Of a stretch of 64,000 bases of DNA, positions 9,313-9,455 are shown in pieces. The stretch lies in sequence record LR756504.1. The stretch is one strand, 5' to 3'. Within the stretch, counting starts at the first letter, position 1. Each line of letters opens with the position of its first letter. The position numbers were made by a program, and so were the translations under genes. The notes beneath the pieces are model-generated. The model made no database searches. It was not told where the DNA came from and worked only from the letters and a program-made list of their open reading frames with translations.

Positions 9313-9455
9313 CTGTAAGAGTTGGATTCGAACCAACACGGTGTAGTTAGCTACAGAACAGATAATTAATTGTGGTCAATCCAAATATTCTGCGTTTATC
9401 CCATTATCACCATCTCCGAGACAGGGAGATATGTCTACCTTTTCATCACCTTACA
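9313..9455 (-). ncRNA. tRNA-Asp(GTC)-like RNA with 75-nt variable arm and U37
   Basis: TGTAAGG/TCTTACA acceptor + G73, ATG/CAT D stem, TCTCC-CTGTCTC-GGAGA anticodon arm, GTTGG-TTCGAAT-CCAAC T arm; 143 nt in total. Confidence 0.75.

Follow-up and report, generated by a model that had tools for sequence, protein, structure and literature searches.

The 64,000-nucleotide (nt) window analysed here, by which we mean the whole stretch of DNA under study, comes from LR756504.1, an uncultured phage of 636,363 bp to which it is 100% identical. At 9313..9455 on its minus strand lies a 143-nt gene that reads as a transfer RNA (tRNA) for aspartate with a 75-nt variable region. The minus-strand order at this locus is a leader open reading frame (ORF), a hairpin with a U run, tRNA-Thr(GGU), the core of a threonyl-tRNA synthetase (ThrRS), tRNA-Asn(GUU) and tRNA-Thr(UGU), an HNH ORF, the tRNA-Asp-like gene, tRNA-Arg(ACG) and a terminator. 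The window has a G+C content of 25-31%, its genes include a T4-type large terminase and a prohead-protease-like protein, and the best metagenome run containing this DNA is a 2017 soil metagenome.

Direct reading and our own cloverleaf scanner resolve the gene into four arms, with all four stems and the conserved and tertiary-contact bases intact and CCA not encoded. Index n below denotes window position 9455 − n + 1 on the minus strand. The acceptor stem pairs indices 1-7 (9449..9455, overlapping the stop codon of the upstream HNH ORF) with indices 136-142, which together with the discriminator G73 at 9313 occupy 9313..9320; its seven pairs begin with U1-A72 and include G2-C71 and one G-U at 7-66. 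U8 precedes the D arm (indices 10-25, 9431..9446), where a 3-bp stem (10-12/23-25) is followed by an A13/A22 mismatch and a loop with A14 and GG. The anticodon arm (indices 27-43, 9413..9429) has a 5-bp stem (27-31/39-43) and the 7-nt loop CUGUCUC with U33, placing the anticodon GUC at 9422-9420, U37 at 9419 and C38 at 9418. The T arm (indices 119-135, 9321..9337) combines a 5-bp stem with the loop UUCGAAU, and an A15-U48 pair is present. The gene thus shows the 7-bp acceptor stem, the A14 and GG of the D arm, U33, the 7-nt anticodon loop and the UUCRANY T loop of a tRNA cloverleaf, and departs from it in having U at 9419 in place of a purine 37. These readings, on the minus strand from 9455 to 9313, confirm the complete acceptor, D, anticodon and T arms, GUC, C38, G73 and pyrimidine 37 reported in a preliminary description of this DNA. 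In E. coli the Asp identity set is G73, G34, U35, C36, C38 and G10; judged by that set, which may not be the host's, the gene has G73, GUC and C38, and an A at position 10. Its anticodon arm is identical at 15 of 16 positions to that of a tRNA-Asp of phage LR756501, the sole difference being A37 there and U37 here.

This scanner, a strict one, gave two matches with a variable region longer than 22 nt in the 636-kb genome, this locus and one tRNA-Ser. The same scan of five shuffled genomes gave 0 matches, on which ground we reject a chance cloverleaf. Rfam returned no tRNA match at 9313-9455 even at E up to 10, and ARAGORN makes no call on the unmodified 143-nt gene. With default settings, ARAGORN calls tRNA-Asp(GTC) in all five in-silico deletions that remove 50 to 71 nt of the arm and is silent when only 25 or 41 nt are deleted. 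Genes of this kind escape the standard tRNA finders, and counts of phage tRNAs are probably too low as a result. A transfer-messenger RNA (tmRNA) or bacterial Y RNA was rejected, with no match in the tmRNA mode of ARAGORN or among the Rfam families.

Structure and conservation of the variable arm

The variable region (indices 44-118, 9338..9412) is predicted to fold into an irregular hairpin. It is closed by GGUG/CACC (indices 45-48/113-116) and contains an 8-bp stem, GCAGAAUA/UGUUCUGU, with two G-U pairs (indices 63-70, 9386..9393, with indices 96-103, 9353..9360). Both helices appear in the unconstrained minimum free energy (MFE) fold and in the cloverleaf-constrained fold, which lies within 1.4 kcal/mol of the MFE; the closing GGTG/CACC and the internal stem noted earlier therefore hold in free and constrained folds alike. 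Natural class II variable arms reach about 13-25 nt. The earlier remark that this structured arm far exceeds class II size is borne out at 75 nt, about three times the longest natural variable arm known to us. The insert also sits, as had been stated, outside the normal intron position, between the anticodon and T stems.

The base of the arm nevertheless has the core geometry of class II tRNAs (Leu, Ser, bacterial Tyr and Sec). As in those tRNAs, a stem-loop stands between the anticodon and T stems, one unpaired base precedes the arm stem, the D stem has 3 bp and positions 15 and 48 pair, here as A15-U48; two nucleotides follow the arm stem. The phage arm differs from theirs in its 75 nt with internal loops and in accompanying the Asp anticodon GUC. 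To our knowledge, tRNA-Asp is class I-shaped in all known cells. The first 10 nt of the arm are identical to the start of the arm of the neighbouring tRNA-Thr(UGU). No second copy of the insert was found in the 636-kb genome or in the tRNA clusters of relatives, where chance matches were at most 17 nt with E >= 0.2. A repeated mobile insert resembling a miniature inverted-repeat transposable element was rejected, given the lack of other copies and an inverted repeat of only 4 nt at the ends.

A related strain, found in three 2023 soil metagenome runs from a study independent of the source, retains the arm. Its 2.3-kb contig aligns at 9324-9430 with 13 mismatches and 0 gaps, leaving the arm length unchanged, and the flanks of this interval are unalignable or replaced. 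Four of the 13 differences are listed, all from the central part of the arm. Two of them make up a two-sided change from A-U to G-C at 9389/9357, which lie on opposite strands of the 8-bp stem, and the other two fall at unpaired sites. No pair is broken, an outcome that together with the two-sided change has P about 0.03 under random transitions. The covariation looked for among homologs thus amounts to one compensatory change in a single relative. The tRNA-Asn extra arm of the same strain also carries a compensatory change, U-A to C-G, and its loop has become GAAA. Retention in the related strain makes the arm look maintained rather than decayed, and as read from these substitutions the evidence for selection on it is modest. 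The preliminary description had held that an insert unstructured and unconserved in homologs would indicate a disrupted pseudogene; this arm folds, and the related strain keeps it.

Searches for further homologs gave little. Exact-pattern scans of IMG/VR, JGI metagenomes and GTDB genomes yielded nothing beyond the genome of this phage and 17-mer matches due to chance, and when the tRNA cluster was searched against GenBank phages, only the phage's own record and ordinary tRNA matches came back. A ThrRS-based search for relatives gave no confirmed IMG/VR locus. The Asp-like gene was not found in the fetched flanks of three truncated phage-like ThrRS homologs, and two HNH endonuclease families, used as a route to the related strain's contig, matched unrelated loci.

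The position and geometry of the arm bear on whether it is retained in the RNA. It could instead be an intervening sequence, some 70-odd nt being cut out by an unknown endonuclease and the ends rejoined to leave a tRNA-Asp of ~73 nt with U37. The phage encodes two Rnl2-family RNA ligases that could do the joining, which keeps such a cut-and-join route conceivable; the shortened gene is a good tRNA-Asp by ARAGORN, and related huge phages have tRNA inserts at other positions, in the anticodon loop and D loop. We consider this distinctly unlikely, because the 636-kb genome has no match to a tRNA splicing endonuclease (PF01974) or RtcB, the insert matches no intron or ribozyme family of Rfam at E up to 10 and is below group I size, and the base of the arm has class II geometry and a start identical to the neighbour's retained arm. 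Beside the 4-bp GGUG/CACC helix there is one bulge, of 4 nt, on the 5′ strand, which is the wrong strand for a bulge-helix-bulge. A bulge-helix-bulge intron, with two 3-nt bulges on opposite strands of a 4-bp helix, was accordingly rejected on the single 4-nt bulge and the missing splicing endonuclease, and a group I intron or known small self-cleaving ribozyme on the lack of an Rfam match in the insert, whose 75 nt are too short. Archaeal and eukaryotic non-canonical tRNA introns share with the phage gene extra sequence away from 37/38; they differ in that the phage gene lacks a bulge-helix-bulge, its genome lacks a splicing endonuclease and the virus is a tailed phage.

A long arm could also change the identity of a tRNA. 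SerRS ignores the anticodon, and with a long arm, G73 and G2-C71 all present, it might charge this RNA so that GAY codons would occasionally be read as Ser. Soil-metagenome allo-tRNAs with long arms and non-Ser anticodons are indeed charged by SerRS (PMC7590224). The first helix of the phage arm is only 4 bp long before a bulge, and in engineered allo-tRNAs SerRS is blocked by arm-stem bulges (PMC7590224). The phage's other extra-arm tRNAs moreover keep cognate acceptors, such as G1-C72 and C2-G71 in tRNA-Thr, and we regard a change of identity as very improbable.

The surrounding tRNA and synthetase cluster

The cluster opens with a leader ORF of 31 codons (11606-11511, minus strand). A strong hairpin and its U run come next, at 11484-11451, and end 5 nt before tRNA-Thr(GGU). 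The first 18 leader codons specify exclusively Met, Thr, Ile, Arg and Asn, and Asp first occurs at codon 23. These codons are the ones read by the seven ordinary tRNAs of the cluster (Thr UGU and GGU, Ile GAU, Arg UCU and ACG, Asn GUU and Met CAU), and by its codons the leader resembles an attenuator that is tuned to the tRNAs encoded with it. Between this phage and the related strain the leader region is conserved at about 96%.

Downstream of tRNA-Thr(GGU), the ThrRS core (10215-11375, minus strand) lacks N-terminal domains. The closest full-length relatives of this ThrRS are alphaproteobacterial (Rickettsiales and Rhodospirillales), at 57-60% identity; identity is higher, at 61-65%, for the three truncated phage-like homologs. 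Next on the minus strand are tRNA-Asn(GUU) and tRNA-Thr(UGU) (10028..10208; 10121-10208 and 10028-10115, respectively), each of 88 nt with a 17-nt extra variable arm, and a free-standing HNH endonuclease ORF of 177 aa (9451..9984, minus strand; PHROG HNH endonuclease E = 2e-22, weak Pfam HNH). tRNA-Arg(ACG) lies at 9193-9266 on the minus strand, and an intrinsic terminator 3′ of it at 9015..9041 closes the unit. From 11451 to 9041 on the minus strand a consensus scan flagged nothing resembling a terminator, which makes co-transcription of the cluster, the tRNA-Asp-like gene included, plausible from the sequence. The preliminary description had placed the gene in an attenuator-controlled transcript. 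A unit bounded by the leader and its terminator (11606-11451) and by the terminator at 9041-9015 stands; the attenuation itself is putative, the Rfam Thr_leader match at the leader reaching 28.6 bits where the gathering score is 55.

The stop codon of the HNH ORF overlaps the first five bases of the tRNA-Asp-like gene, so that RNase P cleavage at the 5′ end of the cloverleaf would trim the HNH mRNA. The tRNA shape might accordingly be nothing but a processing signal, an RNase P/RNase Z site that separates the HNH mRNA from tRNA-Arg in an RNA otherwise without a role. Such a site would need neither the anticodon arm nor the 75-nt arm, and the related strain keeps the arm although its HNH gene is replaced; we give this idea scarcely any weight. 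In that strain 985 letters stand in place of the HNH ORF, ThrRS is absent with 101 letters instead, and the tRNA-Arg(ACG) region has given way to 107 letters. The cluster is thus a mosaic between strains, with tRNA genes kept on either side of replaced stretches (window 9200-11375).

Just downstream of the cluster, window 7400-8581 (minus strand) encodes a 393-aa protein with a faint resemblance to ArgRS (TIGR00456 E = 1e-7; Pfam tRNA-synt_1d below cut-off). The cluster beside this protein holds two tRNA-Arg genes.

Unusual tRNAs in related huge phages

Each oddity of the tRNA-Asp-like gene is seen again in intact tRNAs from related huge phages. Extra variable arms occur in this clade on Lys, Asn, Thr, Val, Glu, Gln, Arg and Met tRNAs. 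Across four phages the Asn extra arm shows covariation, and in two of these the Asn tRNA begins, like the Asp-like gene, with U1-A72. A pyrimidine at position 37 is found in 2 of 194 clade tRNAs. One of the two is a normal 72-nt tRNA-Asp of LR745206, which has U37 and lies among four tandem Asp genes; a tRNA of LR756501 combines a 43-nt variable region with C37. Hairpins in the D loop or anticodon loop occur in other tRNA genes of the clade. The clade's extra-arm tRNAs (Asn, Thr, Lys and others, of 84-91 nt) resemble the Asp-like gene in their cluster, in their arm geometry and, for Thr(UGU), in the first 10 nt of the arm. They differ in having arms of about 17 nt and a purine at 37, the Asp-like arm being more than four times longer and its gene having U37.

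Unusual tRNA genes of related phages include those in LR756501.1 at 204050-207213 (4050-4160, 4246-4333 and 7096-7213 of locus L056) and in LR756502.1 (8572-8674 of locus L043). A clade tRNA-Lys(UUU) has a 17-nt insert in the anticodon loop, and other tRNAs have anticodon loops replaced by long hairpins. LR756504.1 itself encodes a tRNA-Lys(UUU) with a class-II-like 17-nt arm at 399979-400067, and its Leu(CAA) and Leu(AAG) tRNAs are short, at 75-76 nt. Extra-arm tRNA-Thr(UGU), tRNA-Asn(GUU) and tRNA-Lys(UUU) adjoin the ThrRS core or a truncated LysRS. The synthetases of the phage are ThrRS, the truncated LysRS and the distant ArgRS-like gene.

Extra-arm tRNAs and cut-down synthetases may form phage-private tRNA/synthetase pairs. 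If the 143-nt RNA were a working tRNA-Asp, extra arms on many clade tRNAs, often beside truncated phage aminoacyl-tRNA synthetase genes, would amount to a phage-private tRNA architecture. As a natural, maintained case, the 143-nt gene would be an entry point to a wider pattern in which huge phages add arms or hairpins to class-I-type tRNAs near cut-down synthetases and RNA ligases. Such decorated tRNAs would bear on how phages protect or privatise translation amid conflict over host tRNA cleavage.

A divergent tRNA-Asp paralog and its possible roles

The full genome encodes a canonical 74-nt tRNA-Asp(GUC) at LR756504.1 401748-401821. This rules out the 143-nt gene as the sole tRNA-Asp of the phage and makes it a second, divergent paralog. 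No second tRNA-Asp was found in a 288,572-bp IMG/VR record, which corresponds to LR756504.1 89861-378432. That record is classed as complete with inverted terminal repeats; it is an internal piece of the 636-kb genome, and its 210-bp 'terminal repeats' match 93% inside that genome. Gene-absence calls from this fragment are unsafe.

We tentatively favour, with somewhat less than even confidence, a maintained divergent tRNA-Asp(GUC) paralog that retains its arm, yields an RNA that host nucleases would handle poorly, and might act as a spare decoder or a decoy. A number of observations weigh against it. The locus was not found in any RNA run searched. The canonical gene already supplies the phage with tRNA-Asp, and AspRS was not found among the genes of the full phage genome. 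Position 37 is A or G in all 38 other tRNAs that ARAGORN calls in the genome, and A10 replaces the E. coli identity base G10. The folding energy of the arm is unexceptional (z = −1.16 against dinucleotide shuffles). The conservation of the arm comes from one relative and four of its 13 differences, and the aligned interior there is 12% diverged as against 3-4% in nearby non-coding DNA. The first 25 nt and last 11 nt, covering acceptor and D-arm regions, are unaligned at 80%, so that the cloverleaf of the relative may not be intact. AspRS is a class II enzyme that approaches its tRNA from the variable-loop side, and a large arm may therefore hinder charging.

The 143-nt gene could instead be a young pseudogene, a duplicated tRNA-Asp that took up a variable-loop insertion and point changes (U37, A10) and is drifting within a recombining cluster. 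The canonical copy elsewhere, the two departures from decoding and identity rules, the silence of Rfam and ARAGORN, the ordinary stability of the arm, the diverged interior and unalignable ends in the relative and the adjoining mobile HNH gene are all what such decay would leave. Every stem and tertiary-contact base is intact, however; the insert has stayed free of indels while its flanks were replaced, with a compensatory change and no broken pair, and all the odd features have counterparts in clade tRNAs that are clearly intact. We place a pseudogene second to the maintained paralog, as possible but doubtful.

On the favoured reading of a maintained paralog, the class-II-like added arm of the clade would have been extended by about 58 nt into the 75-nt irregular hairpin. 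The gene would be transcribed with the tRNA and ThrRS cluster, normal tRNA end-processing enzymes would release the transcript, and an arm-bearing, tRNA-shaped RNA of about 143-146 nt would persist. Least certain is its role, in which the giant arm and U37 may alter how proteins recognise the molecule. The product would be a tRNA-Asp variant that host nucleases cutting the anticodon loop or variable loop handle poorly, available as a back-up decoder or as a decoy. The preliminary description had proposed a tRNA-mimic non-coding RNA, whether decoy, protein-binding scaffold or processed RNA. Its derivation from tRNA-Asp is upheld; a non-decoding mimic and these roles are conjectural, a working though odd tRNA being the alternative, and since U37 also occurs in the normal-length tRNA-Asp of LR745206, U37 alone is no argument for mimicry.

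By analogy with engineered molecules, retention of the arm is physically plausible. A 183-nt tRNA-Tyr with ~100 nt of Spinach in its variable loop is stable and used by E. coli ribosomes, with a charging loss of only 2.7-fold; fusions in the D loop and T loop are unstable (PMC5397188). Such V-Spinach tRNAs and aptamer-tagged allo-tRNAs (PMC5397188, PMC7590224) resemble the phage gene in placing a large structured RNA in the variable loop of an otherwise normal tRNA, and differ in being man-made with a known aptamer ligand, the phage arm being natural and known from sequence alone. The predicted tRNA described here is natural, not engineered, and has a hyper-extended variable arm.

We know of large domains in the tRNA variable loop only from engineered tRNAs. 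A natural, maintained example would show that evolution also exploits this site. Natural tRNAs are generally held to be shorter than roughly 100 nt. If the 143-nt RNA were a working elongator tRNA-Asp, with the 75-nt arm a handle for a phage protein or a shield against tRNA-cutting defences, it would be the largest natural tRNA known, an outcome that we think rather unlikely.

A role for the giant arm in defence is possible by analogy with known conflicts over tRNA. Anticodon-loop variants of phage tRNAs have been proposed to evade host nucleases (PMC10264068), and Septu cleaves tRNA-Tyr in its variable loop (PMC13096335). In common with the nuclease-escape variants (PMC10264068), the Asp-like gene is an extra phage copy, has a changed anticodon loop (U37) and shares its tRNA cluster with a homing endonuclease. 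Those described are point changes in normal-sized tRNAs, unlike the phage gene, and no expanded arm is described for them.

Other unusual genes were seen in the same genome. Outside the window, LR756504.1 281045-281120 encodes a tRNA with an 8-nt anticodon loop, for which ARAGORN gives 'tcta' as an anticodon of four bases; suppression or the reading of quadruplets is a possible function. A dispersed tRNA-Glu-like family with the 6-nt anticodon loop UUUUCA occurs at window 12122-12197 and 12393-12467 (minus strand) and in at least eight further places in LR756504.1, and in its copy at LR756504.1 308513-308601 the D loop contains a perfect hairpin of 17 nt as an insert. Lastly, a 600-aa ORF at window 22675-24477 (plus strand) joins a C-terminal IMP dehydrogenase domain to a T5orf172 domain (endonuclease-type, residues 164-246), a combination that is unusual, whether it arose by fusion or by insertion.
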